Notes under the pieces: generated by a model | The model's database searches: none | What the model saw: the letters and a program-made list of their open reading frames with translations, nothing else | What the model was told of the DNA's origin: nothing | Program-made: the position numbers and the translations under genes | Assembly (NCBI GenBank): GCA_965285935.1 | Contig: OZ260664.1 | Span: 65,844,001-65,908,000, forward strand | Direction of reading: 5' to 3' | DNA from: Ophelia neglecta | Lineage: Eukaryota | Length of the DNA: 64,000 bases | Shown: positions 36,523-59,162 of the stretch, in pieces | Layout of the letters: each line of letters opens with the position of its first letter | Position numbering within the stretch: position 1 is the first letter of the stretch

Positions 36523-39058
36523 GTTCACTTAGGCCTAAAGTAAAAGTGTACATACATACACCTAACTTTCGCACGGATGGCTCATTAAGTCAATGCAAAT
36601 TCTCATGTAACAACATATTTTGAAAGTCTTCAACATTGCCTCGACTAGCCCTGATTTGGTGTAAAAAAAAGCTTGCAGATCCCTCGTAACGATGTGGTTA
36701 TTTGGTTTTAAATGTATAGGTCAGTACCTGTAAATGGTATAGACATTCCTTGTGTAAAGACCTAGAAGTAAACTCCTTAAATAAATCACTTTTGGCTATT
36801 TGTCCCTCCCTATGTATTCTCTGGACAGTGAGACCATTTAGATCTACAAAAAAGCCGTGTGCAAAACGTTTAATGTCCCTGTTCTGCCTGATTTGTTCTT
36901 CGTTGCCCAGTTGATTGTATTTAGGCCTATATATGAACAGGCCTAAGCTGAAAATAACAGTTCTTTGGCCTATACAGTCTTTAAAATGCCTTATTGGTTT
37001 ATCGGGCGCCTTCGGTATATTTATTTTGCACCTAGACCTAGACAATAACTTGTTTATTTAGACCTTGGTGAAAAAAATAATACAGGCTTACGTTATTTAA
37101 CTCGGGTTTAAACATGTTGGTTTGTTCTAAGGGATTTCTAGTTGTTATTTCAAACTTAGCTGCTAGTTGCCCTTAATTGCTCATGCATAGTTTCTTTCTA
37201 ACTCGTCTTAAGTTCACCTCTTCATAGGCATAATTCTACTGTGTTTGCCTATAGGACAATTGGTATGAATTCTATATGTCCATGCAGAAGTTTGCTTTGC
37301 AAATCAATGTTTAATTCCAATTAGACCATAAAACAAGAGAAATCTTTCTCTGGACTTCATTTGAAGCCTAAAGATAAATTGATTATTACGTCTTCCACCC
37401 ACACTCTAAGAGTTGATTCATTCTAGCAAACCATTCAAGTGTTGAAGACTATGGAATTAGCACCTGCAGTTTCATGCAAACCTTTCTAGTCCTAAATATA
37501 CATGGCACTGGTATCATTGGGTATTGCATTGCAAACATAATGCTTTATGTAACTTGCTCACTGTTGTGCAGCGTTCAGTGCGGCGTTATTGGTTATCGTG
37601 CGGCGAGAGATCACCGCCAAATAAAACAGAAGACAGCATTGGCCTTGCTCTTGCCGTACAATAACACAGAATACCACATTGTCGATCAGCTCGTTCCATG
37701 TAGCAGGGTTGTTGCGCAGTTTGCCTGCACACACGCTGAATACAGACACCTAGGCCTATTTAGGTCTCTCGAAAAATGCTGCTGAATGATCACAGTATAG
37801 TAAGCTTTTTGAACGAAGACGATTGGCTGTGTTCAATCAATGTTTACTTCATTTTTCTACCTGTACCGTCTGGGGTGGTTTAATGGAGACATTTTTCGGC
37901 ATTCAACAATAAACAAAAGACTCTTAAATACAAGAAAGCACTTTTAAAGATGTAGCGAGCTTGCTATTTTCCTTTTTTATAATAAACAACATTCCCTCAC
38001 ATCCGTCAAATAGTGTCGGAGCCATGAAGCACATCATTTCGCGCACATGCAGGTCTACCTAGTAGGCTATACCGAAATAAACCGCCTGTCTTTTTATACG
38101 CAATCAATCAAGAAATTATAAAATCGCACCCCATGTTGCTATATTCCAATTCTTAAAATATAAATGAAACCATTTTTCTTAGCCACGAAAGTAAACACAA
38201 TTTGAGTCTTAAAACCTCCCGTTCTTCGTGTAATCATCCTTTAACGTTGACTCATTGAATGTTATTGTAGTTACCGCAAGTGTGGGTTTTCCAAACTACT
38301 TTATACTTATAGTTGATTATTGTACAAAACCAAACGGTGGATTTTGAAATAGGCTTTTACCACGAATGGGTGGCGGTTAACCATGAGAAAGTTATATCAC
38401 ACGAGCCGTAGGCGAAAGTAATATAAGGTGCACGAGTTCAGCAGTGAGCGCCCGAGGCCCTAGGGATGACCAGTGTGATATTTCACAAACTATACATCAT
38501 GCATTTTTAAATAATATACTTGGATATATCAATATTAATATATAACACCTATTTTCCTACATTTATGCCAAATACAAAGATGACATATATGTTCATATGA
38601 TTATAACAAGCTAAATATAATACACAATAGATAACTAAATAAATAGATAAATAAATAAATATATATATTAGCTATTAAATATTAGATCATTTCATGATTA
38701 TGTGCATAGCCCATATATACGTCATGCAGTTATCATTGAATACTCAAAGTAGGCCTACGTGTTTTGCATTAAATCTGTGCATTTAACGTGTCTAGCAATG
38801 GTGTCAAGGAAATGTATGATTCTTGATATTAGTTATTTACATTTTAATAGTAGTTGTTTTCTTTATTTGAGTATATTTTATCTGTGTTTAAGTTGTATCG
38901 GTTTGTTGTATACTCTGTAACATTTGTACATATAGCGTGCATGTTGTACATGATGCGTCAGAGATGACCCCAATAAGAATATTATTCATTCATTTATTAA
39001 TTCTTTATAACTAACAGATCTTTTATTTCTATAGGGTGCAGCCAGCAGATTAACAAAA

Positions 39059-42000
39059 ATGACAGGACACCTAGGTGAGTATCATAATACCGATACTATT
39101 CGCGAGGGGCATATAATTGGCATGGGTTTAAACTAAGGGTATAAAACATTTTTTTGCTACTTAAATCAGCAGTTTTTTTAGTATATTATTACTTGCTGCA
39201 TATTGTGTGACTTAAAATAAGCATATTTTCAGTATTTCCAGTAGGCGTTGTGCTGCTTCTTGGCACCCTTACAATTTCGGGTAAGTCAGTCGACTTGAAG
39301 CTTCCGATTTGTCAATTTTGATGACATTCTTTTTGTTTATGGTTATTGTTTTTTTCATTGACCATGGTTGTGCCCTTTAACAGAATAACGAGCAATACCA
39401 ATCAACCCTCTTGGATTTATTTATGATTTCAGCCGCCGTGAGCTCGAAAGGTCGAACGTTTTATTTTATGTTCCTGGACATAAATACGGGTACGTCTTTG
39501 GCCACTGGCGGTCCAAGCCTGTATTTCTCATCCAGTAGCTCCTCGGATCTCCGCGCCACTGTCAGCGGACCACGGCTCTCTGCGCCCAGGTCGGTGACCA
39601 TCCCACGAAAAGGCACGGCTAGGGAGAGCTTTGACCGCTCATTGCGTGTTATTACCACTGATGTGACTAGTCAGGGTCTGGTGGCCACCCTAGACAGCTC
39701 GACAGATGCCATCGCTCTGTATGCGTCAAACACTGAGAGATTTTCGAGCGACGGTTTCTTGATTTTCGCCGAGGAAGCATTAGGAAACAATTATTACGTG
39801 ATGAGTTACCGTCCCCAGGGCGGTAGAAAGGCTCAAGTGGGTATTGTAGGAACCCAGGACGCCACCTCGGTGACTATTGAGATCCCCGTGAACGCCGCTG
39901 GAATCCAATTCACCCTGGCCGGTCTAACCTTCCAGGCCGGCTTCGTCGTACAGAGGACAATAAACCGTTTACAGACACTGCTCATCCAAAGCTTTCAAGA
40001 CCTGAGCGGCGTGCGTATCACAACTAGCAGACCGGTGGCGGTCTTTAGTGGCACTAACCATGAGGAGGTCCTTTCCGTCACGGGGTTCCCGGACCACCTG
40101 GTGGCACAGCTGCCCCCCGTGAAGTTTTACGGGACTCGGTACAATCTAGTTCCCCTGCCTGGGCGCACGGAAGGCGACACGGTCAAGGTCGTAGCCAGTC
40201 AGGACGCTACGGCAGTGGTCTTTTCTAGCACCGGATCGACCATCAACCTGAACGCCGGTGGAGTCGGCGAAGTGGAGCTTCGAGCCGATCAAACCCAGTG
40301 TGTCACCGCTAATAAGCCCATACTACTCGTCCAATATTGCCGTACCCCAAGCAGCGATGTTATTGTGGGAGATGCTGTTATGGTTCTGGTACCAGCAGTT
40401 TCGCAATACGGTCAAGATTACACCTTCCAGCCGCCAATCAGCAGCGGAGGAACATTTCCGTGAGTAATATAATAGTTTGGGGCGTGTCAATCCTTGCATG
40501 TGGATCATTTGCAGCTTTGTTTTAATTTAAGTAAACAGTAACTGCCATGTCGTTGATTCTTTTGCAGATTTAATTTCGTTATCCTTGTAGTAGAAGCGTC
40601 GGCAAGGAACTCAATCCGACTAAACAGTCGTTTTGTGTCCGAGTATGGAGTCACGTGGACGGACATCACAGGTTAGTCACGTGGCTTCCAAAATTAATAT
40701 CCCCACACTGACATACATGCCAATATTTAATTTGTTAACATAAATTTCTTCAACAGATTATTCAACATTAAATGTCAGTAATATATATTACGGTCGCTAG
40801 GAGTAAATTTCTGATTCTTCCCTTTGCTCTGAACTCGGGCATAGGGCCAACTCAGCCCATAGGGTACAGTCAAACCATGCCGTTCTTTTTTATCTATAGG
40901 CTGCACGCCGACTTACACAAGCACGCTGCTGTCAATAGGCGGTGAGGACACTTCTGTGGTAGACAGTACAGACCCCGCTATTAGCTTTGAGGTTATCATG
41001 TACGGATACACCAGTGGCGAGTCCTATGGTCTACCAGCCGGTTTGCACTTCAGAGATGCCACAACAGGTAGGGTTCCGCAAACTGTCCAGGTTTTTTTTT
41101 CGTATTTTAAACTAGTCTAAGAGAAATTTAAATTAGTTTGTTTATCATAGTTTGTTTCTTTATGATGCCGCTTAGTTTGTACACTCGTGTATTTGTTAAA
41201 TCTTTACGATAAAGCCTTTCTAATCTAGGCTTGAAAAGAAGTAAGAATAGGCCTAATTTAATAGCAATCAAAATTGATGAATTATATAAGCGTTGCATGT
41301 GCATGATTTTCTTAATGACATCATTGCAGTACCGCCACCATTATCAAGTACACCCAGTATCGCCCCGAGCGTTCCAGGCACCATCAACACTTCCGGAACC
41401 ATCGCTTCCAGTGTAGGGCCAAGTACTGTTCCAAGTGTGGCTCCGAGTGTGGCACCAAGTGCGCTTCCAAGTGTGGCTCCAAGTGTAGCACCAAGTGCGC
41501 TTCCAAGTGTGGCTCCAAGTGTAGCTCCAAGTGTTCTTCCAAGTGTGGCTCCAAGCGTAGCTCCAAGTGTGCTTCCAAGTGTGGCTCCAAGTATCGCTCC
41601 TACTGTTGCAAGCAGTGCTGCACCTAGTGCAGTTCCCAGTAGTGCACCTAGCGTTGCGCCCAGTCAATTGCCGAGTGTAACCCCGAGGGATCCATCGACA
41701 GAAGGTAGGACATTTCTCTAGTGTATTATATAATAATTCTGCCCATATTGCACGACGAACCTTATATTTTCTTTTTGTTGTCATATAAGGCCCAAAAGTG
41801 GAGTCAGTGCCCTGACACCTGTAATTGTGACCTGGTCACATGGTCACAACGGTCTCAGGCCATATATCAACTTTTGAGCCATATCTACTTATAAGGGACC
41901 CAGACATCTACTACCATTTCCATTTATTCGAGTCAAGTCATATCGAATTCTTTTTGTCCCCCCGAGGACAATTTTTTGCAAAGTCCGTTAAAGATACTTG

Positions 42001-45000
42001 TCCAATTTTTATTGCAGGCTGTATGATTGGCACCGCCGGCCGTCAGTTCGCGATGATGTTTTTGCAGAGCACTTCATCTCAAGACCCGATAGATGTATAC
42101 TTGAGTAACACGGCTACCGGCGGCCAGACGGCCATGGTGACTTTGGAATACTCCGGACCCTCTGGAGACCGTCTCTCCCTTGTGGGCACTGTATCTTCCC
42201 AGCAGACGACCGTCGTCAGCCTCCCCGGCTACACCCAGGCTTCCGGCACTGCTATAGAAGACAAGGGGGTTATGGTCAATTCTACCGAGGACATAAGCGT
42301 CTTCGTTCTTAACAAGCAGACGGGGAGCTGTGGGGGATTTACCGCCCTACCCATAGACGCCCTTGGTCAGGATTATATGGCTATCTCCGCCTGGCCTATG
42401 AACATCGGCGTTGACCGCTTTACTGAGATTGGCGTGGTTGCCCTCGAGGATAACACCCAGGTCAACATCCAATTCATAGCTGGGAAGGGGGTGACAATAG
42501 ATTACCAGGGACAAACGTATGGCAGTAATGACCCGGACAAATTACTAAAAGTGATTCTCAGTAGAAACCAGACAATGCAGCTGGTGGCCGAACAGTTTGC
42601 GGCAGACGTCACTGGGACCCACATAAGATCTTCGGCACCCGTCGCTGTCTTCAGTGGTGCTCGCACTGTCGTCATTGGAGGCGGTAATTCTGATCACATT
42701 GTAGAACAGATGAGACCCATATCCTCATACGGTAGGTCATTTCTTTACTAATAATCTTAAATATAATAACATATATAATGTCCAGTTAGCGATGTTCGCA
42801 AAGTTGAAAAATAAATTACCCAATAATTAAATGCATTTCTCTTTAAACGTCATGCAGGCACCCAATTTGCGATGGCTCCCTTTCCTGATCAGGGCCGATA
42901 CGGATTCGTGTTGGTAGCGGCTTTGAACGGAACGACCACCAGTGCCAGTGGCAATATGAAGCTCGACGCCAGTTGGAGCTACCCGACAGACCTGCCTGAG
43001 CAAGTCGCCGGTCCCCTCTTCATTACGTCATCACATCCCATTGTACTCGCACAATATGTCTTAAGTCAGAGCGCGAGTAACCGAGGAGGGCCCAGTATGC
43101 TGGTGGTGCCGAGCGTCAACCAATATCAGAATACCTACTCCGTCAGCATTCCCCGAGGAAGTTACCAGTCCTATCTGATGTTTATCATCCCAAGAAACGA
43201 AGACTCTGGGCTGCTAGTCAACGATGTGCAGGTATAAATGTATTTCATTTCATTTAGTTCTATAACCACTAATTCTACTATTTCAGTTTTTATTTCGTGT
43301 ATAATCGGATACTTGTCACTAACTATGGTTATATAGCGCATGTACATCCCCGCCGACTGATAATGAAGTGGCAGGGTATGATGTTCATCGAAACTGTTGA
43401 GTCGGTTGATTTAAACAAACTTAGTGTGTGAACCTTTACCTAGATTGGACCATATTTCGCATACTCCGCTAACTAAAGGTGATAAGCAATAATTAAGAAA
43501 TAAATTAGGGCCTAACTATATGCTTCCCGTTTGTTTAAATGGCAAAATATGTGCACTATTTCTAGATTACTGGCGTTATATGGGAAGAGGTCCCAAACTC
43601 CTCGCCCCCTATGTGGGCTGGCCACTCCGAGCTTTCCGGGTCGGATTTCGTGGTCGTGAGGCACAAAGACTCCTCGGTCAAGTTTGGAGCTTATATTTTC
43701 TCCAGGGAAGTAAGATCGGAAGGGACAGACACGACCTGCGCAGTAGTCTATCAAGCTGGACCTTGCTTTGAATTCGGCGTCGTAAGTATATAGTCATATT
43801 GATGGATCACTGCAATTATCATATGTCAAATAGAAACCGATAGAATTGTTTAAGATGCTCGTTGTGATTTAGTTTGAAATAACTTCGTACGTGTACTTAG
43901 AAATGACGAAGAAATTATATTTTTGTTAGATATGTTTATTTATATATGACATTTTATGGTAGCCTATTTCTTTCCAGGAAACACCAACATCCCCGAATGC
44001 AGCTTCAACTAGAGCTCCTAGCTTGGCTTCTAGCGTAGTGCCTAGCGTATTTTCAAGTGCATTGTCAAGTGCTATTCCCAACTTATCACCCAGTGCCTCT
44101 CCTAGTATAGGTGCCAGTGTTGTCCCGAGTGTACTTCCAAGTGTAGCCCCGAGTGTGGCACCGAGTGCCGCACCGAGTGTAGTTCCCTCCTCGGCCCGGC
44201 CTCCTAGCGCCAGTCTACCTACATCAGCCCCAGGTCGAGCGGACGACATGGGCACAGGGTTCAGCCTTGTCTTCCCTGGGCTGTCCACTACTGTCGAACC
44301 GGTTAGACTACACATCGGAACGTTAGAGACGGACACTGTAACTGTTACAATCACGTACCAATTAACAGGCGCCACATCGGTTGTATTGACAGAGAGAGAA
44401 GTCCGCAGAAGTTTGGGTGTAATTGTAGAATTGCCGGATGCAGCTAGAAACTTACCAATAAGTGTAAGCTCCAGCGCACCTGTCAGTATCTCAGGGATCA
44501 ACACTGGTTCCTGTAGCGGCTACAAGGCTATACCAGACACCCGCCTCAACAACGAGTACCGCATCACTACCTGGTCCACTATCTCCGGTGGACAGGCAAT
44601 GGTCGGTCTGCTTTCCACCAGGGACACTAATCTTGTAACCGTCAATATCATTGGCTCCGCTGATGACATCATAACTATCAGTGACACCAGCTTCAAGCTT
44701 GGCACCGCCAGCAGGAAGTTTGTATTTGAGATGAGCTCCAACGATTTCATGCCTATCTTCTCCGACGGGGATCTGACTGGTACCTCCGTTCAGACAGAGC
44801 AGGAGGTTGCTGTATTTGGAGGCAACACGGATGCTGTGGTCGGGGAAGACACTTCGCAGACTGGCCAGATGCTTTCCCAGTTTGCTCCGATTACTAGCTG
44901 GGGTACAACATTCATTGTACACAGTGTGCCGGGCAGTCCAAATGTCGGTTACTTTGTCAAGTTCCTGACACTGGAGGCTGACACGGTACTGATTATTCGT

Positions 45001-48000
45001 GAAGGCTTTTCCACTGAGGTTGTCACTATTCAAGGAGCAGACCAGTACGTCCAATATGAAGGCACTGGCGTGATGTCAATCATCGCCACCAGACCCATCC
45101 AGGTCGTCCAATACATTAAGAGTGCAAGAACAGGTTCCTCAGATGACAGCTTCCCAACTGCCGTGCTGATACCCTCCTCCCAGCAGTTCAAAAACTCCTA
45201 TTTATTTAACATTGAGGAGACCGATTCTTTCTCCAGCTACTTGACCCTAGTTGTACCTGACACAGAGAAAAACTCACTCACTTTGAATGGCGCGTTTCTT
45301 CCGGAAGGAATCATCTGGACCAGCGTTCCCGCCCTGAATCCTGCCATGGTAACTTCTGTGATAGCAGCTCCGCCAGGCGATCATGTACTTAGTCACCCTT
45401 CTCAATTTTTCGGAGTGTATGTTTTTGCCGTGTCAGACAGCTGTGCTTATGGTTTCCCGGCAGGCATGTACTTGGATGATTTATCGGTAAGTTTTTATCT
45501 ATATACATTTTATCCTTTCATAACAGTAATGCAGGATAACAGTACTTATGAACGCATAAAGTCATATTTCTCTATTCATATATCCCGCCTGTTATTTCAG
45601 CCAACATCACCTTCCTCGACTACTAGCCCCTCGCCTGCATCATTTCAGCCGACAGTCCAGCCAAGTGCAGTCCCTAGCATTGTGTCAAGCGCAAGTACTT
45701 CAGCCGTCCCGAGTGTTCCATCCTCAAGTGTCCCTAGTTCACCACCTAGTGCAGCCCCTACTGTACCTCCCAGTGCAGTTCCAAGCGTGGTACCAAGTGT
45801 CGTACCAAGTGTCGTACCAAGTGTCGTACCAAGTGACGTGCCGTCATCAGCTGTCTCTACCAGTGTGACGCCTAGTGTATCACCTAGTGCAGCTCCCACT
45901 GCACCTCCAAGCGCTGTACCAAGCGTGGTACCCAGTGTGGTACCAAGTATGGTACCAAGTATGGTACCAAGTGTGGTACCGGCATCAGCCGTCCCTACCA
46001 GTGTGACGCCTAGTGTATCACCCAGTGCAGCTCCCACTGCACCTCCAAGCGCTGTACCAAGCGTGGTGCCCAGTGTGGTACCAAGTGTGGTGTCAAGTAT
46101 GGTACCAAGTGTGGTACCGGCATCAGCCGTCCCTACCAGTGTGACGCCTAGTGTATCACCCAGTGCAGCTCCCACTGCACCTCCAAGCGCTGTACCAAGC
46201 GTGGTACCCAGTGTGGTACCAAGTATGGTACCAAGTATGGTACCAAGTGTGGTACCGGCATCAGCCGTCCCTGTCAGTGTGACGCCTAGTGTATCACCCA
46301 GTGCAGCTCCCACTGCACCTCCAAGCGCTGTACCAAGCGTGGTACCCAGTGTGGTACCAAGTATGGTACCAAGTATGGTACCAAGTGTGGTACCGGCATC
46401 AGCCGTCCCTACCAGTGTGACGCCTAGTGTATCACCCAGTGCAGCTCCCACTGCACCTCCAAGCGCTGTACCAAGCGTGGTGCCCAGTGTGGTACCAAGT
46501 GTGGTGTCAAGTATGGTACCAAGTGTGGTACCGGCATCAGCCGTCCCTACCAGTGTGACGCCTAGTGTATCACCCAGTGCAGCCCCCATTGCACCTCCAA
46601 GCGCTGTACCAAGCGTGGTGCCCAGTGTGGTACCAAGTGCGTTGCCGTCATCAGCTGCCCCTGCCAGTTTAACTCCTATCGTTACGCCAAGTGCAGCCCC
46701 GACCATTCCCGTGACTGTTGTGCCAAGTGTGATGCCTAGTGTGGTCCCCAGTTCCTTAGCCCCTATCACCCCCAGCGCTCCTCCTTTAACAACCGTTGCG
46801 ACAAGCGCGTTACCCAGTGTAGTGCCGAGTGTAGTTCCCAGCGTCGTACCAAGTGTCGTGCCAAGTTTATTGCCCAGTGAAGTCCCTACATCCACACCGC
46901 TCTCCCCTACACTGCCTACTGGACCGATGGCCGACGACTTGGGAGAGGTGTTCTCAGTGGTGTTTCCCGGCGATTCGACTAGTGCCCGTCCAGTGTATGT
47001 TCTTGTGTCCACTCTCCAGATAGGACTAGTTACAGTGACTATTGAAACAGACCCAAGGTCGAGCATAACTGTGTCTGTGACCGCTTTTGTCACTCGTGGC
47101 AGTTCAGCAGTCATAGAACTGGCAGGAAATACCAGGAACCAGCACTTGGTTGTGCGGTCCGATGCCCCAGTCGCTCTGAACACTATCAACCAAGGCTCAT
47201 GTAGTAGTTACAAGTCTCTACCAGTCACAAATCTTGGCAACGAGTATTACATAACCACGTTCCAGCCGTCTAATGGAGGACAGGCTGTTCTAGGTGTCCT
47301 TTCCCTGGAAGAGAACAACATCGTGACAATAGACTTGAAGGGAAACCCGGCAGACCAAGTTACCATTGGACCAACCACATTTACTCTGGGGGACACGTCA
47401 GATAGATATGTTTTTGAGTTAGACGCTAATTCCTATCTAGAGATCCATTCGAACGGGGACCTCAGCGGCTCTTACGTAACATCGGAGGATAGTGTCTCGG
47501 TATTTGGAGGCAATTTGGACACCACTGTAGAAACGGTCACACTAGCGGATCAGATGATCTCTCAGTTTCCACCAATTGACTCCTGGGGTAAACAGTTTGT
47601 TATCGCCGACATACCAGGCACGACAGTTGGCTACTATGTCAAGGTCATTGCCAAGGGACCAAACACACAGATTTTAGTCAGCGATGCCATAAGTATCACT
47701 CCGTTCACGTTAACCAATGCTGGTGTATTTGCCTCATTTAACCTTCGGAGTACTGTGCATATTTCAGCCACCGAACCCATTCAGGTAATACGCTACTCAA
47801 AGAGCCCAAGACAAAACTCCGATGACGTGACCTCGCCAGCAGCCCTGTTAATCCCTCCCGTAGAGCAGTACAAGTCAGACTTCCTGTTTGCTCTACGGGA
47901 TGACAGTAACTACGAGTATTATCTAACAATAATAGTGGACGATGGCGACAAGGCAAATCTCAGATTGAACGATGCTGTTTTGTTGGGACTGAACTGGTCA

Positions 48001-51000
48001 CCCGTTCCCCGGACCACTATGGTGACTGCCACTCTGAGCGCACCGAGTGGCGGCCATGTTCTTAACCTTCCTGGACGACCCTTTATGGCATTCCTCTATG
48101 GCATTAATAGTGGAGACTGCGCTTTTGCTTTCCCCGCAGGAATAGGGCTTCAACAACTATATCAGGTTTGTTACAGGATGTATTAATGTTAATATCAATA
48201 TTAAAATTAATATCAATATTGATATTAATATATATATAATTATTTCTTTTACTTCGGAACACTGATTTTACTAATATGTTGCAACGAGTAATCATCCAAA
48301 CATACCATGATCTCAACGTAATTGTTGTTGTTGATTAATGCAGTATTGGGTGTACATTACATACTTCAGCCTGATACCACTACTTCTACAACGAGAAGTA
48401 CTGCCTCAACCCCTGTGGCCAGCGTGGTGCCATCCGTTGTTCCTAGTGCAGTTCCGTCCGTGGTTCCAAGTCTCATTCCATCCGTGGTTCCAAGCGATGT
48501 CCCAACTGGAACGACTGTACTAAGTGCTGTGCCTTCTCTAGTACCATCAGTGGTACCAAGTGTGTATCCATCAGTTTTACCTTCTGTGGTTCCAAGTGCT
48601 GTACCGTCAGTGAGTCCTAGTGTAGTGCCCTCCGATGTCCCAAGCATTGTGCCATCAGCAGTGCCCAGTGTTAGTCCATCACTGCCACCTTCAACCGTAA
48701 GTGTAATGGAATGTTTAGTTACCTGGGTCGATAATACACGTACAATGTGTGTACAGGGGAGTATTTACCAAGAACGCATGCGCCGTATCAATATTTTAGC
48801 AGATTTATAACCTTTACCGAATGTTAACAATAAGAAGAACATATTTAAATTTCAGTCGACATCAAGTACAAGTACTTCCACCAGGATGACAACTACTGTG
48901 GCTACTCCTTTACCATCGACGGTTTCACCTACTCCTTCTACAAGTCCTAACACGATAACAACAATTTTGCCCATTACAAGCCCATCTATTGGCATCACAT
49001 CAACCCCGACTCCGTCTACTACGACCTCCAGTCCCGCCACCACCACCCTCGCCACCCCAGGTAAATAGTTTCACCATAAATGATTACAAGTATTTGCATG
49101 AACTGAATTAAAAGGGAATCTTAAAATATGTGAAAATAAATTACATTTAAAAAGCTGAACAATGAACATTACATTGTGTACGGGAATTGATAATATTATA
49201 AGATAAAGACATACGATGCCTATGACCATGAATTTAACACTGAAACACTCACATGTGATTTTGGGTCCACCTATCTTTATTTTTGTGCCGTTCTTGTTCA
49301 GTTGGTCCTCACAACAGTGACTTTGGCAGGGAGTTCATTCTGGCTTATCCTGGAGACCCTACCGACTCCAATACTGTCTTTGCATACGTTGCTACCCTGG
49401 AAACGAGTCCAGTAGCTGTCAAGTTTATGGGCACTGCTCCAGACAGCAATCTTGATATAAATATACAGGTAAGTCGTTTAACATTTAATACACAACATAA
49501 AATGTTGCATGTCCGAAGGAAATTTATTCTGAAAAAGGCGAGGCCGCATTTCCAAAAGATTATCATGCGTTTTTGTTTTTATAGGTAACTACCAGTTTTG
49601 GACGGGAGGTATCGTTACCTGGTGATATACGCGGCCAGGTAGTGAAGGTGACCGCCTCTGCTCCAGTCAGTATCAATGCCATCAACAGAGGTTCTTGCAG
49701 TGCTTACAAGTCACTGCCGACAGCCCATGCTGATACCGAGTATCGAGTGATTACTTGGTCCCCCAGTGCCGGAGGTCGCTCCACCCTTGTTGTCGCCTCA
49801 GTCACGGACGGTAACTTAGTGGAGCTGCAGCTCCGAGGTACTACCACGGACATGGTACAAATCGGTAATGCTAGTCCAATCGAGATGGGAACGGGTGTGT
49901 TCCTACTGCCCGCCAATACAGGGGACTTCGTTACCATCTACTCAACGGGTGACATGACGGGCTCCAGTATCACCAGCTCCTCCCCCATAGTAGTGTTTGC
50001 CGGCAATCTGGAAACCTCCATCGGATCAGGCTTACTTACTGATCAGGTTCTCTCACAGTTCCCGCCTGTCAACACCTGGGGCAAAAGTTTTCTAGTTGGC
50101 CCTATTCCTGAATCCTTAACCAATGGCTACATTCTCAAGATCATTGCTCAGGTTGCCAGCACCAGAGTGTCTCTTGTGGAGGGATCAAAGTTAACCGAGG
50201 TCACCATTAGTTCCCCAGCTAGATACGTGTTGTTCGAGGCCAGTGCTGCGTGCTTTATCACAACCAGCAACCCTGTGCAGATAGTACAGTTTGTCAAGAG
50301 TCCCAATGTTGACTCCATTGCCGTTGCAGCTCCGTCTTCCTTGTTTATTCCGCCCATTGAACAGTTGAAGTCAAAATACCTCTTCACGGTCACCTCTGAC
50401 GGCATATACAGAAGGTGTGTGAATGTGATTGTATTTATCTAAGTGAATCTCAACACCATCGACGCTGGTTTATCTGGATCTCCTTCTGGTGTTATTGCCG
50501 AGTTAGAAACATTGGATAAACGATGAAGAGTTCTATATTCATACATACTTATTTAAAATTTTATTTCTAGTTATACTACACTTTTTATGGAGGATGAGGA
50601 CATCCCCGGGTTTCGAATGAACGGAGGACCCATCAAAGGCCCTCTCTGGACGAAGGTTATTGGGAGCAGTCCTCCCATGTCTACCACATCTTTCCCCGCT
50701 CCCGCTGGATCCTGGGTGTTCTCGCACATCGCCGAAAGGCAGTTCGGTGTGTACGTCTACTCCGTCTCTCCCAATGACTGTTCCTTTGCTTTCCCTGGCG
50801 GCATGCACCTCGACCTTATCAACCAGGTAAGCAGAGTAACAGATATTTTAAAGAATTGTACACAATCACAGACCGCATAAATCAGCTTATTTGGATTCTA
50901 GGTCTACGGTTCTTATGGCGGAAGACTACAGATTCCACAAGCAAGCCTTTTTTGCTAGACTTGGCCATGAATGATATATACAGTAGATTTACTAGTCCCA

Positions 51001-54000
51001 TCGATATTCGTTTAAATTATTATTAATCAAAGGGATTAGCTACTTACAAACCTGGTATTAAATTGATGATAATAAAATAGATAACTACGTTGATATTTTT
51101 AGGAGGTAAGCCCGACACTTCCACCTCTCACACCGTCACCAATACCGACTTCACGGACGACTACCCCGATGACGACCACACCACGGCCAAGCACCATTAT
51201 CCCTGCAACTCCTCCCTTCTCAGACGACACTGTCGGTAAGTGTCTTCGAGCTTCGAACAAAATGACTATATGAGTCGACTGTAGAGCAAGGAAGCCAAGG
51301 AAATCTTGTTAAAAGATAAATAATTCGCTAAAGAAATCTAACATGTTTTTGTACCAGGTGGATGTCAAAGAAGCAACATGGGTCGAACCTTCCTACTGGC
51401 TTTCCTGCAAAATGGCAACACCCCGGTTAACCTCGAACTGTATCCGGCAACTGTCAGCTCTCAGGCCATCTCTATCAGCGTCCGATCCCCGAGGTGGGTT
51501 GGTAATTATATATCATTGTAGCTTCCGGTCCTTTTCTACTGGCGTCAGATCCCCGCGCTATTTTGGTCAATGATATATGGTAGTGGCTCCCAGAACATCT
51601 CGTCTGGCGTCATATCCCAAAGTAGACTGTCTTTGGGTGGGTTGCGGCTCCGAGTAAGTATACATCGGGGTCAGATCCCCGAAAAAGCGTCTCTATCGAA
51701 ATACAGATTCTGTAATCAGGGACTTGCTAATGTCCTTAGACCACTGCATGCCAGAGCCAGGTCATCGATATAGGTGATAAGAAGGCATAGGCCTGTTCTT
51801 TGTTAAAATTGTCTCTGCAAGGGCTCCGTGCCTATATGCATTCATATAGTAAAAAGATTTATTTAAAGTTATGTAACTTGCAATTACTGCTGTTATGGAA
51901 TCGCTTACAATATCGGAAAAAACGAGGAACAGTACAGAATGTTGAATGGTACACCTTGTGAAGTAGACCATCTCTTGTTCCCTACAGGTTTACCAGTGAG
52001 CCGGTTAACGCCGATTTCAGTATATCAGCCGGCAATGTGGCTGTTATTTCCGTGCCCGGTGCCATTACTCTGCGCGGCTCTGAGAAGTCCACCAAGGCAA
52101 TAGAGATCCAGGCGTCGGCAGATATAGGTAGGCAAAACAGTGTATGATAACGTAGCTAACTAGTTGGTGCTGAAGACAAAAAACATGATTTGTGTTAATT
52201 TATAGGTCTATTGTAATTTGAATAGGCCTATCTCTGCTTCAAAGATTGCCGCTCCATGATTTATTTTATTTTTGTTTTCCCGCAAATTGTAGATCTACGC
52301 TTATAGGTTTCGATACAGAAAACTATTATTATTTGTAGGAATCTATGGGATGAGTTCTGTGGCGGACTCGTGCGATGGCTACTTAGCGTTCCCAACAGAT
52401 TCACTGGGAACGGAGTATTATGCATTGGCCCACTGGCCCCCGTCAGAGCGGACGCAAATAGGTAGGTAGTAGTGTTTGTGCTGTTTCCACCTTCTGGGAG
52501 TCCGCTTTGCCTTCTTCCGCCCAACTTTTTGGGGTATTAGTAGCAATATTGACGGTTAAGGTGGTATAAGTAGAAACATAAGTAGTGGTATTTTTTTTTA
52601 CATGGCGTACCTATTTTACATAGTAAGCAGGACAAATGAAAAATGCCACTTTCATTCATAATAAGACTATCATTAATGTCCAGGAAAGTAGTACAGAACT
52701 GTGAAAAGGGAAAGCTAAACTTTACACAGCATTGAACAAAACGATCCGGCAATGTACTTATATTAAATATGTATATACACATATGTAGCTGAACACAAGA
52801 ACTACTGGACCTAATTATTTAATCTTAGAAAAGATATTCTGTCGCTTTGTTTATTTTTGATAAATAAAACACGACATATAAAGATATGCGACCACTTGTG
52901 TTGCCATGAAAACACCACCCTGTGTTTTAGTGCCTGTGAACCTAAAATATTCTTTGGGGTTTTGTTCTTTTAAAGGTATTGTTGCAGCGGAGGATGGTAC
53001 TATTGTACAAGTTTACCTACAAATTGGCCGCAGTATACAGGTACAATACGACAGCAGGGTGTATGTCAGCGGAGAAACCATTACGATGTCTCTGAATAAA
53101 TATGACACAGTCGAACTGCAGGACTTCAACGACCTTTCTGGCACCCATATCAAGTACGAAACCTTTACTGGACGCTGCGCAGCGATAAGTGTTAACTTGT
53201 CCTGAAATTATATTATAATTAATAACTTGTGGTCTTAATTCATAGGTCTAAGCTAGTACGTTAAGGCTAATACTTATTTATGCCCTAAAATATACGGTAA
53301 CCCCGCTTTTACCAAGCGACCGTACCCAATTCCGGAGCTTCTTCAGGCACTACCTATAACGGTAAGAACATTCAGAAGTAGAAAAATATAAAACATTGTA
53401 TAGGGCACTAAAGAGAAGTAAATGGCGCCCTTGTCGAAATATTGCTTTGGATTAACCATTTACCAGTAGCTCTAGGAGAGGCCATCGACTGTCTGGTTCG
53501 GCGCGACGCGGAAGTTCGGAAAATTTGGTGCGAATTCGAATGGTTTAGAATAATTACAGCAATAATATTACTATTGACGATCGCAAATAAAGAATTAGAT
53601 CGCCCGTACCACCAACAACTAAAACGACCAGGGTGAAATCTTCAGTTTGTTTTGTCTGTGCTATAGGGTTCTGATAATGAGATTAACCACAATGACCATG
53701 AACCGGCCTTACACACGACACATGTATACAGACCACCTGTCGATATGACTATCGTAAAATAACGCGTCTAAACAGACCACTCCCGTTGTCAGCCCTGTAA
53801 TTTCTATACCCTTGGTGGTCTCAATTCACAGTTTCACTGCAGTTTTTAGTATATTAATTGCGTTTTTTCCAGCTCAACGAAGCCGGTGGCAGTGTTTAGC
53901 GGCAACGTGGAAACCCAAGTGGAGGGAAATGTCTTGAGTGCCGACCGCTCCTATCTGGTGGAGATGATGCCCCCCGTAAACACCTGGGGTACCACCTACT

Positions 54001-56248
54001 TTATAGTGCCGCTTCCTAATAGGTATTTATAAAATCTTTGATCTCATGCCATTTTTCCATATGCCGGTGCATGTGCAATTTCACTTTCCTAGTTGAGAAC
54101 ACCGGTCAAAATTGTCAGTTCAGTTCGAGTAGAAATTCCATCATTATAGGTCACTCTTACCGTTTTGTTCAATTTAAATGCCATACATTTAAGTTGAATT
54201 ACCATTCAGGACTGATGGTGACTTGGTGAAAATAGTGACCAGCCAAGATACCACTCGGGTATCGACTACAGACCAACTTCCGGTAACGGTATTCCTGGCC
54301 GGAGAGACCATATGGACATCACTCAGCTCCAGGTAACTCATTGTAGTTACAAATAGGTCTGACATAATAACCTACTACCCCCTACGAATATATTGAAGCT
54401 TTCTAGAATTGTAATGAATTTAACTGATTCGAATTAAATCGAGTCAACTGTCACGTAGATAGTATTATTACTATTTGTACGGTGGGGGACATACGTTTCC
54501 AAACGCCTAGTTGTAACCACTCTGTGTCTAATTCAGTTTTAATCATCCACTCTTTTCCAGCTCGTACGCGATGGTCACAGCGGACAAGCCGATAATGGTG
54601 ACCCAGTTGGCAAAAAGTCGTCTGGAGGCAGAGACCAACAAAGACCCGGCGATGATGATCATCCCGCCCATGAGTCAGTGGCGACCTCTGTATACATTCA
54701 CCACGTCAATGGCGCTCGCGGACTTCCAACATTTCGCCTTGGTGGTTATTCAAAAGGTAAGAAGCCAGCTGAAACATTATATAGTGCTAGAACCCCCCCC
54801 CCCCCCCCCCGCAGAACCTACAACGGGAACTCCCCTTCTAAACAGTATGGAGCGTACCCCTCCCCCTCGAGGCTAGAAACGTTTTTGTTGCGATTCAGTG
54901 TTTTTGTTTGTTAACTCAAATGGGTGTAACTGCCTAATTAAATGGAATGTTTTAAACAATGAATTTACATAGCACGATTTTGTCGGATTCAAAGTGCTTT
55001 AATGCACTATTACCAAATCTCTTCTCACCAGGACCAGGTCAGTTTTCTGATGATCGACGGACAGCCCGTAGCCCAGGACGGCTGGACATCATTTCCTAAC
55101 AGCTTACCAGAGATGGTCGGACGCTCATTCGAGGTATCTGCTGGCGTGCATCAACTCAGACACAGCCAAGGGGTTCTGTTCGGGGCCTACATATTCGGCT
55201 CTTCTCCGACCAATTGTGCATATGCTTTCGCTGCAGGAACTTGTCTCAACAACAGACTGGTAAGTGATTGTTATGTACTAGCATGCCTGATTGTCTCAGT
55301 CTCAGAACGACCCCGCCCTCACTTCCACAGCCCTGCTGCCGGTCGTATTGAGCTTTTGGATGATGGACCACTTTCACCATGCTGGTGTATTATGGAAGTC
55401 GTTCACCATCATCCAAACCATAAGTGGTCTTTATAAACTTATTGCTAGCAAACAAAAGTTGTTTTTGGTGTAATGACAGCTATTTAAAGCACCTTTAGGT
55501 GCATGGTAGCCATTCAAGGGGATTGAGGGGCTTGGCTTACCGTTGTATTTTGGCCATAAGGGATCATTTGCTGAGTAAGGGCGATCTAAAAACAGTCGTC
55601 AGTATATGAAGTCATAGTTTCAGATTTAAACCAATACAAATAAAATATTGGGAAGAGTATTGTCAAACGGCAGGAAATATATTACGGTAATTGCTAATGC
55701 AGATGGTCTTTCTGTAGCAGCACAGCTCGCAGTATCGGACGGGCGGGTGCGTGTGACCGAACTGGTCGGCAATGAATAATTTTCGAGTGAATTTTTATAT
55801 TTTCATAGTAGATCTATATGCATAATGGAATAATTGATGCTGTTATTCCATGATTCTGGCCGGAAAAACTGTAAATAGCGCCTCTGAATCTCTATTATTC
55901 TCGGATAATCCCACCCTGTGTGTTGCAGCACGACCACAGCAATACAAGATCCGGTCAAGAGACCTTTGCGGATAGCAATATTCGCTGTTGGTAGCCGCAT
56001 TGGATTGAGACTGACATAAGTTATAATGATGTATCATATAAAGTATGATTAATAGTCAAAGATAAATACATTGATGTTTATTTTGTTCATACACAATGTC
56101 CGTGAACAGCCAAATATTATTTTTGTATCTATCTCTGAGTAATTAGAGCAGCGATTTGCAGACGAACTTTGCTGGGTACCTGGCACCTACATGTGCTTGA
56201 CACAGCTATCATTACACCAAAAACAACATTTCTTTACTAACAACAAGG

Positions 56249-56288
<40 letters not shown>

Positions 56289-59162
56289 AACAACAAGACC
56301 GCTTTGATCCATAACCGCCTGCCGAGAAGGTAGACATTTCACCTTTTGGAGTAGTATATCCTATCCAACACATCTATCCAACACATCTAGGCAAATGGCA
56401 ATACCAGCACTGTAGGTTCTTATTTTCACAGGTTATTTGGTTATAAATTCCTCAGCTGAACATCCGATCCTAACCCCCGCCTTTACAAGTCTTTCAACGC
56501 ACGCCTTTGAGCGCGTTAGGGAATTGACGTTTTATAAAAGACATTGTTTACAAATAAAATAAAACATATTAATTATTAAACACCACCAATCCGCTGTTTG
56601 CAAAGTGCCGCCATTTGACCAAGGCATGCTACAGGAAGCGACTGGGGCAGATGCTTGTTCAGTGCCAGGAGATAACTACTCTCCACAGTCAGAATGCTTT
56701 TATGCTACGCTCTTCGGACTCACAGCCAAACGAACGGCTTTTTATTGGTTTAAACATATTTATTTATACATAATTTGGATTTTACAAAAGACGAGGGCAT
56801 AACAAAGGTAATTTCCAAATAAATCATTGAGACAATATTTACAAATATGCGTGAGATAAAAATGAGATGATGAAATGAGATGAGGGAGTTACTATACATA
56901 TAATCTATTGACATTACATGCAATTTGTCTGCTGAGTCCAAAAGACCAAGAAACTGGCAAGTAGACCGGGAGCGATATGATGCGACATGATAAGACAATA
57001 ATAGGAATAATCAATATAGTAATCCAGATTCGGGTTACTAAAGAAAATGAAAGACATATTGAAACAAAATATTTGTGAAATAGCCTACTATTTACAACGA
57101 AATATAACAATAGTCACTGGTTTATAAAAAATGATGCACAACCGATAATAACACAAATACATTAGATAATATTGCTTTTTATTCCTTATAATCAAAAGCT
57201 GTTTTGCAACCCTGGCTTCTCCCACGCTTGCTTCCGACTTTACACAAATTTATGCTTTACCTTTCTTGGCCACGAGTAAGTTAAGCATACTAGTAGGCCT
57301 ATGTTTGTTTTTCTTAAGGGGACAACACTTGCGCCGACTCTCGTGCCGACATCCAACCTACCACCCTCTTTTGTTCCAACATCTTCGACAACCACTCTAT
57401 CTACCACTCCGACAACAACAACAACAACAAGTGAGCACGGTTTTCTCTGTATTTTTAGAACGATTTTTGCCTGGATTCCCAATACCTAAACGCTAAATGC
57501 GATGATAGTCTTCGATTTTGATATAAGCCGTGAATTTAATTTAATAATAAAAAGGAGTTGTGTTTCATTTTACCCCAGAATTAAAATGGTTAGCTTACTG
57601 ACGCAGCAAAGCAACAAAATATTCCCTAAAATGTGTTTTACTCGACATTTCACTTTTCCAGCGCTTCCTCCTAAACAGAACGCAGGCCGGCAATATACTG
57701 TACCATATCCCACGAACAAAGAGGTCATTCTGTTTATCTCAACCCAGGTAGAGAACAGCGTGACTGTGGAAGCATTCTACCCCGGCGGCAGTCAACAAAT
57801 AGTGATCATGAAGGGCGCCTCTGGTCGAATTGACCTCCCTGCTAACACGGCGAACAACGCCGTCGTCAAAATTTCGTCCTCGGATGTTATCAGTATTAAT
57901 TCCTTCACATTGGGTTCGTGCCGTTCATACCTTGCTCTGACGTCCAGCAGTCTGGCTACAGAGTATTATGTAATGACTTGGTCGCCATTCAGTGGGTTGG
58001 GTGAGGCATTTTTTACAATTTCCTCATTTGCAAATGACAATGAAATCGATGTGTTCTTTGGCGGCCCATCAAGTCAGACGATCATCTGGGGGTCACAGAA
58101 AGCTCCAGGTGGCTCAACACGCTCGTTATCCCTAGCCGCAGACGAGACCGTTACCTTCACATCCAGTGGAGACATGACTGGCACATACATCGTATCATCA
58201 GATGCTTTAGCCGTGTATGCCGGCAACACGGATATTAGAATCGGGGTCCAGGGTAGCCTGGTGGACGACGTGGGGTCCCAGTTCCCGCCAACCTACACAT
58301 GGGGTAAACACTTTATCATGACCCCAATCCCTGAGAGCCTTACGGGCTACTACGTGAAGGTGCTGGCTCAAGAGGCAAACACATTGATTGCCTTCTTTGG
58401 GCCTATCTACAAATTTGTGACTATTGGCGAAGGTGATTCTATCGTGATAGACGTGTTCGATAACAGTCCATCTAATCTCATCACAAGCCAACCAGTACTT
58501 GTCGTACAGTACTCCAAGACGCCCAGCGCTCCAAGCGAAAACTCTGCACCATCCGCCATACTGGTTCCGCCGGTTGAGCAATGGAAATTCAACTATGATT
58601 TCATTGTACCGGCTACTGCCGGTTTTAAGGCCAGTATAATGATCGCATGTCCTTCGAACAAGCTAACCGGCATTCAGGTGAATAAATTGGGCATTGGATT
58701 GGATGACTGGCTGCCGATACCGGAAACTGATATAGTCACCAAATCTATACGCGCTCCAGATATTTTCTACAACGTCGAGCACCTGGACGAAATTGAAATT
58801 GGGGTGTTTGTCTACGGAACGCGAAGAAACGACTGCTCTTTCGGATTCCCCGCCGGAATGAGTCTCTTCGATCTGACCAGTCTGGATGTAAGTAGTCAGA
58901 AAATGCACAGATATATCAATACTTGAAGGCGAAAGAACCAGAAGTAGTATAGAACTTTAAAATCGCACTTAAATTTCATATATGACCTGCCGATACGGTA
59001 TCAAAATAAAAATGCTTCTGTTCGTTTCAAAGTGCCATAGGCCTATCGCAAACTGCATATTAATATTTAGTCAATAATATTTTTAGTACGAGACGACCAC
59101 TTCGGAAGCATCAACTACCACCGAGACAACTACCACTACCACTGAACTACCAGAGGAACAAG
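39059..59162 (+). CDS. Giant secreted multi-domain IgGFc-binding (FCGBP N-terminal-like) protein with Pro/Ser/Val/Thr-rich linkers; 3' end not found
   Basis: 28 phase-consistent exons: 39059-39074, 39233-39280, 39433-40459, 40568-40671, 40900-41067, 41330-41704, 42018-42731, 42858-43231, 43566-43781, 43978-45486, 45601-48165, 48370-48696, 48856-49060, 49302-49468, 49585-50414, 50571-50826, 51103-51235, 51358-51493, 51988-52127, 52339-52461, 52976-53153, 53873-54022, 54210-54332, 54561-54756, 55032-55259, 57319-57430, 57662-58887, 59087-59162. Total 11,722 nt, open throughout. Signal peptide MTGHLVFPVGVVLLLGTLTISA. Seven ~400-aa repeats with motifs G+xF..xF, LGxxY, DLSGxxIxSxxPVAVFSG, DHLxxQxPPxxxWG, PIxVxQY, LxPxxxQ, YGFPAG. 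Confidence 0.88.
41330..41704 (+). repeat. Coding 12-bp repeat (PSVA/PSAL tetrapeptides), linker between domains 1 and 2
   Basis: CCAAGTGTGGCT-type units within a single exon. Confidence 0.9.
45844..46670 (+). repeat. Coding tandem repeat, 138-bp (46-aa) unit, about 6 copies, linker between domains 3 and 4
   Basis: GCATCAGCCGTCCCT recurs at 45982, 46120, 46258, 46396 and 46534. Unit ASAVPTSVTPSVSPSAAPTAPPSAVPSVVPSVVPSxVxSMVPSVVP. Confidence 0.93.
53696..53839. mobile_element. Degenerate CAGTG-type MITE remnant
   Basis: Internal GACCACCTG / GGTGGTC repeats and a right end CAGTTTCACTG resembling 30609-30786. Confidence 0.35.
56236..56297 (+). mobile_element. Poly(A)-only retroposon-like insertion with 12-bp target-site duplication
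   Basis: ACTAACAACAAG (56236-56247), then G plus ~37 A, then ACTAACAACAAG (56286-56297); preceded by TTT. Confidence 0.75.

Follow-up and report, generated by a model that had tools for sequence, protein, structure and literature searches.

Does one stretch of the Ophelia neglecta genome encode a single giant secreted protein built from repeated IgGFc_binding domains and, if so, what might such a protein do? The stretch, hereafter the window, comprises 64,000 nucleotides (nt) of contig OZ260664.1 (C7:65844001-65908000), part of a 762-Mb invertebrate genome, and its guanine-plus-cytosine content climbs from about 0.37 to values of 0.44-0.52 in the interval from 40 to 56 kb. An initial inspection of the bare sequence (the sequence-only reading) had described a spliced frame on the plus strand between 39059 and 59162 with a signal peptide, seven repeats alternating with mucin-like spacers and no VWD domain in view, in an architecture that it took to be undescribed. 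The best explanation of this locus, which we consider reasonably probable, is one giant secreted seven-domain gene product acting as an O-glycosylated multivalent scaffold. The domains, numbered D1 to D7, belong to the IgGFc_binding family (Pfam PF17517), also termed FCGBP_N, and the principal spacers are numbered L1 to L6. Much of the evidence comes from comparison with an orthologue on ENA contig ERZ25069296:ctg15192, from a related organism with about 50% amino acid identity, which was the best match of an exhaustive protein search; an earlier word search with a 1,407-residue open reading frame had been swamped by PT-repeat proteins, and a version using D4 only had given one bacterial-type protein.

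The gene structure as modelled is highly probable. The gene lies on the plus strand, occupies 33.5 kb and comprises 30 exons, running from window position 39059 to C7:65916596 and ending 8.6 kb beyond the window end, with 12.4 kb of stop-free coding sequence for a protein of 4,124 amino acids and 29 GT-AG introns of consistent phase. The part within the window consists of 28 exons (39059-59162) which, when walked with carried phases, yield 3,907 codons without a single stop, bearing out the earlier description of a spliced frame exceeding 3,900 amino acids. For each neighbouring pair of coding blocks, all frame-keeping GT/AG pairs were listed and the best-scoring was taken; this was canonical in every case and the same as that chosen in the sequence-only reading, whose borders at 39059, 39433, 41067, 42018, 43781, 45486, 48165, 49302, 50826, 51358, 55259, 57662, 58887 and 59162 each corresponded to the best GT-AG choice with compatible phase. 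Searches were run exon by exon, the joined frame being walked only for phases and composition. Translation from the start at 39059 through two mini-exons (39059-39074 and 39233-39280) into the start of exon 3 (39433) reads MTGHLVFPVGVVLLLGTLTISAAVSS, which has, by eye, the appearance of the typical signal peptide that had been proposed; it is the only one in the gene and stands at its very start. Its two exons are:

39059..39074, plus strand: exon 1, start codon and first five signal-peptide residues, ending in phase 1, with donor ACCTAG/gtgagt (the slash marks the splice site).
39233..39280, plus strand: exon 2, encoding VFPVGVVLLLGTLTIS, judged by eye to be the hydrophobic core.

Further along the gene, D3, spacer L3 and D4 share one 1,407-codon open frame (43963-48183). 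Inside it lies a likely 114-nt intron, 45487-45600 (gtaagt...tttcag), that contains no stop and does not shift the frame; splicing or retaining it leaves the frame intact. Within intron 6, at 41758-41954, contig depth reaches approximately 490-1,870, compared with 7-35 in the surrounding sequence, and many contigs end there, marking a high-copy dispersed repeat.

The identity of the seven repeats was checked both with the Pfam hidden Markov model and with a profile built from the three intact copies, D3, D4 and D7. PF17517 matched all long plus-strand open reading frames of the region, with E values from 2.3e-12 to 1.7e-78. Scores for D1 (160 bits), D2 (93 and 47), D3 and D4 together (264), D5 (119) and D7 (136) exceed the gathering score of 25.6 bits, and D6 gave exon-level matches of 37-40 bits, three being above the cut-off. 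The D3/D4/D7 profile retrieved seven copies, all on the plus strand (39693-41067, 42029-43781, 44233-45504, 46927-48183, 49316-50832, approximately 51358-55262 and 57676-58878), and no eighth elsewhere in the window. The repeats are thus called IgGFc_binding by both methods, as had been anticipated. Each is approximately 400 amino acids long, four of the seven being split by introns, and identity between positions within the gene is 20-42%. They are arranged as follows:

39433..41067, plus strand: D1, in three exons (39433-40459, 40568-40671, 40900-41067); PF17517 E=7.9e-47.
42018..43781, plus strand: D2, in three exons (42018-42731, 42858-43231, 43566-43781); PF17517 E=2.5e-26 and 2.3e-12.
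43978..45486, plus strand: exon 10, L2 (87 amino acids) and D3; matched by PF17517 and, at 714 bits, by the D3/D4/D7 profile; 49% identity to the orthologue's copy.
45601..48165, plus strand: exon 11, L3 (443 amino acids) and D4; matched by the D3/D4/D7 profile; structural model of D4 with a predicted local distance difference test (pLDDT) score of 93.7.
49302..50826, plus strand: D5, in three exons (49302-49468, 49585-50414, 50571-50826); PF17517 E=4.3e-34; 62% identity to the orthologue.
51358..55259, plus strand: D6, in eight small exons (51358-51493, 51988-52127, 52339-52461, 52976-53153, 53873-54022, 54210-54332, 54561-54756, 55032-55259).
57662..58887, plus strand: D7, a single exon ending in phase 0; PF17517 E=2e-39.

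The remark that no VWD domain was in view can be extended beyond the window: Pfam detected no VWD, C8 or TIL domain in any scanned open reading frame of the gene, and a genome-wide search found no PF00094 match within 11 Mb of it, the nearest VWD on the chromosome lying more than 11 Mb away.

Between and after these domains lie low-complexity spacers rich in Pro, Ser, Thr, Val and Ala and containing internal tandem repeats, the repeat motif being unlike the PG motif of the frog proteins discussed below. The seven spacers total 938 amino acids (L1 125, L2 87, L3 443, L4 177, L5 44, L6 37 and a terminal Thr-rich exon 25). They contain 4-27% Pro (20-27% in L1-L5) and 31-57% Ser and Thr, lack Cys and have hardly any charged residues; VPSV, SVVP and PSVV are the most frequent words, and Tandem Repeats Finder reported periods of 12, 36 and 138 nt. 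No other such spacer stretches were found in the 158 kb around the gene. The sequence-only reading's picture of the IgGFc_binding domain as the repeat unit of one secreted, beads-on-a-string protein with mucin-like spacers therefore stands. Spacers with features beyond those given above are:

41330..41704, plus strand: L1, 125 amino acids of (V/A)APS repeats with a 12/36-nt period; weak match to the Pfam PT repeat.
45743-46639, plus strand: 6.5 copies of a 138-nt repeat within L3.
48370..49060, plus strand: L4, in two exons, one of VPS type (48370-48696) and one Thr-rich (48856-49060), both with counterparts in the orthologue.
51103..51235, plus strand: L5, 44 amino acids beginning EVSPTLPPLTPSP; the orthologue's equivalent begins EVSPTVPPLTPVP.
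57319..57430, plus strand: L6, 37 amino acids, Thr-rich, following a 2,059-nt intron.
59087..59162, plus strand: Thr-rich exon, YETTTSEASTTTETTTTTTELPEEQ, ending in phase 1 and splicing to two exons outside the window.

Two side observations concern these regions. Opposite L3, the minus strand at 45645-47189 contains a 514-codon open frame that reflects repeat composition and does not represent a gene; an artefact of the same kind appears among the prokaryote-style gene calls on the orthologous contig. The intron before L6 contains a perfect run of 38 A residues (A38, 56249-56286), which may be the tail of a retroposed element.

The orthologue is collinear with the gene from D3 to the stop, with the same spacer exons and phase-1 junctions. 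It shares the D3-spacer-D4 open frame, the VPS-type and Thr-rich exons of L4, the three-exon D5 and an EVSPT..PPLTP spacer, and likewise has a Thr-rich L6, D7 and a Thr-rich exon after D7. All eight D6 exons have counterparts, seven of them 44-74% identical and the sixth (54210-54332) 31%. Exons are conserved and introns are not. Domains at equivalent positions are 49% (D3), 49% (D4), 62% (D5) and 51% (D7) identical, compared with the 20-42% seen between positions, and a genome-wide search with the orthologue's last domain ranks D7 first (51% identity, 434.7 bits versus 196.6 for the next). As each position matches its own orthologue, the array must be older than the divergence of the two organisms, with every position retained since; judged from these alignments, the seven domains appear to be old and not interchangeable, which suggests that each position has a partner or mechanical role of its own.

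Variants from three DNA runs of one sample, covering 39000-44900, fit the modelled frame; introns make up 33% of this stretch. All five frame-breaking indel sites fall in predicted introns (p ~0.004), and the only exonic indel is a 12-nt in-frame deletion at 44158, present in one of the three runs, which removes one repeat unit of L2 and represents a length polymorphism of the (V/A)PS repeat. The 25 exonic single-nucleotide polymorphisms comprise 13 synonymous and 12 nonsynonymous changes, compared with an expectation of 25-30% synonymous (p 0.003-0.017). This pattern agrees with purifying selection.

Where does the gene end? The last exon within the window (59087-59162) finishes in phase 1, from which the sequence-only reading had expected more coding sequence, and two further exons, the last of the gene, were found downstream. 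These lie outside the window at window-equivalent positions 71748-72056 and 72253-72596 (C7:65915748-65916596), 12.6 kb downstream of 59162, and encode two copies of an unnamed, Cys-bearing beta domain of approximately 100 amino acids, with a stop immediately after the second. They were found only through comparison with the orthologous contig: in a tblastx search of the orthologue's tail against the 31 kb after D7, the only conserved stretch was at window-equivalent 71735-72058 and 72327-72596, and Pfam searches of seven open reading frames in the 59-87 kb interval revealed no further exons. In both species the Thr-rich exon ends G/gta in phase 1; the acceptor is pyrimidine-rich and the exon behind it opens with AY, so that an Asp codon results; the following junction is also in phase 1 in both, with CSC(K/R) G/gt followed by ag/C(T/C) GC(T/C), encoding Ala-Ala. 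In the orthologue, a stop lies four codons ahead of the acceptor of the first C-terminal exon, and the open frame between that stop and the conserved sequence contains no Met. The exon therefore has to be joined to one further upstream and cannot be the first exon of a separate gene. At two other loci of the genome, C7:41.05 Mb and C5:47.81 Mb, this pair likewise comes after an IgGFc_binding domain of matching strand. The intron preceding the pair, at 12.6 kb, is far longer than the others, which range from 108 to 2,059 nt. It contains, at window-equivalent positions of approximately 67.4-69.8 kb, a 47-nt satellite of about 38 copies with 93% matches and higher-order periods of 93 and 140 nt, which creates spurious open frames of 90-140 codons.

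The C-terminal unit was modelled as a small beta domain with a pLDDT of 91.5; in unit A of the pair five Cys are conserved, with a C-x-C motif at either end and the fifth Cys midway. No Pfam family matched the C-terminal exons even at E values up to 10, Foldseek found nothing similar to the unit in the PDB, and it was present in none of 195 fetched homologues. An insert of DNMT5, the best match in a wide VIA search (Z 7.7), was considered and set aside as unconvincing. In the ESM Atlas the shape of the unit recurs, at template modelling (TM) scores of 0.8-0.86, in unnamed eukaryotic clusters, protist and cnidarian, some of which also have TSP1, EGF or EF-hand domains next to it. In this genome it was always seen as a tandem pair, and it is a candidate new domain family. 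The protein has no membrane anchor.

A structural model of D4, built from a 40-sequence alignment, is all-beta, with the pLDDT of 93.7 noted above and a predicted TM score of 0.91. When aligned with VIA-align, it resolves into four successive parts of approximately 90-100 residues that match small beta-sandwiches, including TM1070 (Z 9.9), carbohydrate-binding modules (Z 5.3-7.4) and the macroglobulin (MG) domains of alpha-2-macroglobulin, TEP1 and C3 (Z 5.6-6.4). On the basis of this model, four beta-sandwich subdomains in series are predicted for each IgGFc_binding domain; a beta-helix, also considered for the domain, was dropped given this arrangement. Foldseek returned only poor global matches for the D4 model, and no PDB chain matched the family by sequence. 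Across the 40 aligned domains, the near-invariant residues are mostly Gly, Pro, Trp and Tyr, and there is no invariant His, Cys or other typical catalytic residue.

The gene also belongs to a large expanded family, with at least 126 PF17517 matches in the genome. Approximately 20 further copies lie closely packed on the plus strand at window-equivalent 87.5-138.8 kb (C7:65931467-65982779). Since these have neither the P/S/T/V/A spacers nor the C-terminal unit, they probably constitute one or more separate paralogous genes. Similar arrays occur at C8:15.996-16.049 Mb, C8:12.98-12.99 Mb and C7:41.86-41.93 Mb, the last being 23.9 Mb from the gene.

What, then, might the protein do? From its start to its stop the modelled protein comprises a signal peptide, seven IgGFc_binding domains with spacers of 25-443 amino acids between them, and two C-terminal beta domains. 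The spacers are probably heavily O-glycosylated and extended, as are the proline-, threonine- and serine-rich (PTS) regions of mucins, and the whole may act as a multivalent scaffold, built like beads on a string, in mucus, an adhesive, a tube or cuticle matrix or another extracellular secretion. Glycans and folded domains could together make many weak cross-links with lectins and other chains, as has been proposed for the PRIT proteins of frogs, and the C-terminal pair may serve in pairing or attachment. Assignment of the protein to this functional class, O-glycosylated multivalent scaffolds of secreted mucus, adhesive or matrix, draws on analogy and is plausible but evenly poised.

Several observations weigh against this explanation. 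That all exons share one transcript, that the last intron spans 12.6 kb and that the in-frame 114-nt intron is removed are predictions from DNA, and the signal peptide was called by eye. A run search found three runs holding the stretch, all of genomic DNA from one sample, and no RNA run; contigs from these read through the introns and contain no exon joints. The fold matches of D4 are weak, the best having a Z of 9.9, and show no function. Compared with classical mucin PTS regions, the spacers contain more Val and Ala and less Thr, and they have none of the PG motifs of the frog PRIT repeats. Finally, even in human FCGBP the domain's biochemical function is not known, and its IgG binding has not been reproducible (PMC11796319).

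The most direct challenge to a single gene is that the region might instead hold several shorter tandem genes, with a spacer and one or two IgGFc_binding domains apiece, or that the C-terminal pair might come from a separate gene. All runs holding the stretch are DNA, the last intron is strikingly long beside the others, and the spacerless same-strand copies downstream indicate that tandem paralogous genes do occur here. Nevertheless, there is a single signal peptide at the start and no stop between domains, all 29 junctions keep phase, D3 and D4 occupy one open frame, and no other conserved coding segment was found in the long intron; furthermore, the orthologue retains the spacer exons and junction phases, including that from the Thr-rich exon to the C-terminal pair, whose exon frame there has no start codon before the conserved part. 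Either arrangement is improbable. Still less credit can be given to a decaying or misassembled, functionless repeat, the least probable of the alternatives and close to negligible: the spacer DNA is highly repetitive, with 138-nt and 12-nt units, and D6 is dispersed over eight small exons, yet there are no stops in 4,124 codons, conservation follows exons and not introns, polymorphism fits purifying selection, and independent contigs from three DNA runs span the stretch.

Other alternatives accept the gene and differ over its role. Seven lectin-like domains on glycosylated stalks could agglutinate microbes, making the protein an immune or microbe-binding scaffold and not a mechanical gel or glue. 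The resemblance of the subdomains to carbohydrate-binding modules and to the MG domains of complement and alpha-2-macroglobulin (Z 5-7.4) would suit such a role, as would the expansion of the family to at least 126 matches and the divergence of seven individually conserved domains, as for distinct specificities. However, these fold matches are within the range that the tool labels common arrangements, no conserved sugar-binding motif was found, the invariant residues (mostly Gly, Pro, Trp and Tyr) being structural in type, and no ligand is known for the IgGFc_binding domain in any organism (PMC4948705, PMC11796319), such that this role is unlikely. It is very improbable that the domains are enzymes modifying secreted peptides, in the manner of a homologue, the frog-skin peptidyl-aminoacyl L/D-isomerase (UniProt Q58PK6). 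The Bombina isomerase does match the frog protein PRIT-Dg at 2e-101 (PMC11237159), but that isomerase is a single amphibian case, an array of seven enzymes borne on mucin-like stalks would have no precedent, and the 40 aligned domains share no invariant His, Cys or other residue of catalytic type.

The claim in the sequence-only reading that the architecture is undescribed did not survive comparison with published work. Amphibian PRITs, reported from frog skin glue in 2024, have a design of the same type: a signal peptide and multiple tandem IgGFc-binding domains, the VWD domains having been lost; their interdomain repeats are disordered and glycosylated (PMC11237159). PRIT-Dg is the main glue protein, is glycosylated and binds galectin, and the Bombina isomerase was its database match, with an e-value of 2e-101 (PMC11237159). 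Absence of VWD had been noted earlier by Lang et al. (2016), who defined FCGBP_N, found it in 176 invertebrate and 564 bacterial proteins and reported that most invertebrates have it without VWD, with two as the highest copy number given in their text (PMC4948705). Moreover, the exhaustive search showed that public predicted proteins carry 3-10 tandem copies without VWD. Examples are those of the catshark Scyliorhinus (XP_038671270.1, six copies and ZP), Owenia fusiformis (CAH1792146.1, four copies with CUB/EGF) and the ichthyosporean Chromosphaera perkinsii (EP01135_P001584, ten copies); tandem-copy proteins in MetaClust carry collagen, EGF or TSP1.

The PRIT lineage has been placed in an early amphibian ancestor, arising from a VWD-bearing gene cluster (PMC11237159), so the invertebrate gene is most likely an independent build. 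Membership of the amphibian lineage is accordingly unlikely, and the gene is probably an independently evolved, PRIT-like protein of an invertebrate. A bolder proposal, to which we give only tentative and rather doubtful assent, is that PRIT-like proteins are not an amphibian invention but an old, recurrent design for gels and glues, in which seven non-equivalent domains, kept here as a fixed series across species, would each have their own ligand or mechanical role, capped by an unnamed but widespread beta domain that pairs or anchors the chains. FCGBP_N is abundant in animals and in gliding bacteria and sits on a main protein of human gut mucus, and the frog glue PRIT is so far the only functional lead for tandem arrays of it. 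Were this bolder proposal true, the gene would be an experimental handle on the biochemical function of the domain. An independent invertebrate version would show the design to be recurrent and would supply natural domain variants for binding and mechanical studies, and the gene suggests candidates for components of the mucus, tubes or adhesives that invertebrates secrete.

Compared with known systems, the protein shares with vertebrate FCGBP the FCGBP_N (PF17517) domain, secretion and a tie to mucin-like material. In FCGBP, however, a single N-terminal copy (some predictions show two) precedes as many as 13 VWD-C8-TIL units, whereas here there are seven copies and no such unit. Gel-forming mucins likewise have a signal peptide, giant size and long, uncharged, Cys-free stretches rich in Pro, Ser and Thr that alternate with folded domains; by contrast, the present protein has no VWD assemblies, CysD domains or C-terminal cystine knot, and its spacers are much shorter and rich in Val and Ala. 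The Scyliorhinus, Owenia and Chromosphaera proteins resemble it in carrying 3-10 tandem IgGFc_binding domains without VWD, but the gaps between these are short or not PTS-rich, with Pro, Ser and Thr mostly making up no more than 0.3 of residues as against approximately 0.5-0.7 here. Partner domains in the public tandem proteins are ZP, CUB, EGF, collagen or TSP1, and none has the C-terminal pair. Amphibian PRITs, whose glue role and galectin binding have been shown in the frog protein only, differ in having PG-motif repeats in place of (V/A)(V/A)PS and Thr-rich spacers, and recently duplicated exons in place of seven old, diverged and positionally conserved domains, of which four are intron-split; the two unnamed beta domains at the C-terminus are a further distinction of the present protein. 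What the two have in common is nonetheless the basic design: a signal peptide, at least two tandem IgGFc-binding domains free of VWD-C8-TIL units, secretion and very great length, with a transcript of approximately 10 kb in the frog and 12.4 kb of coding sequence here.

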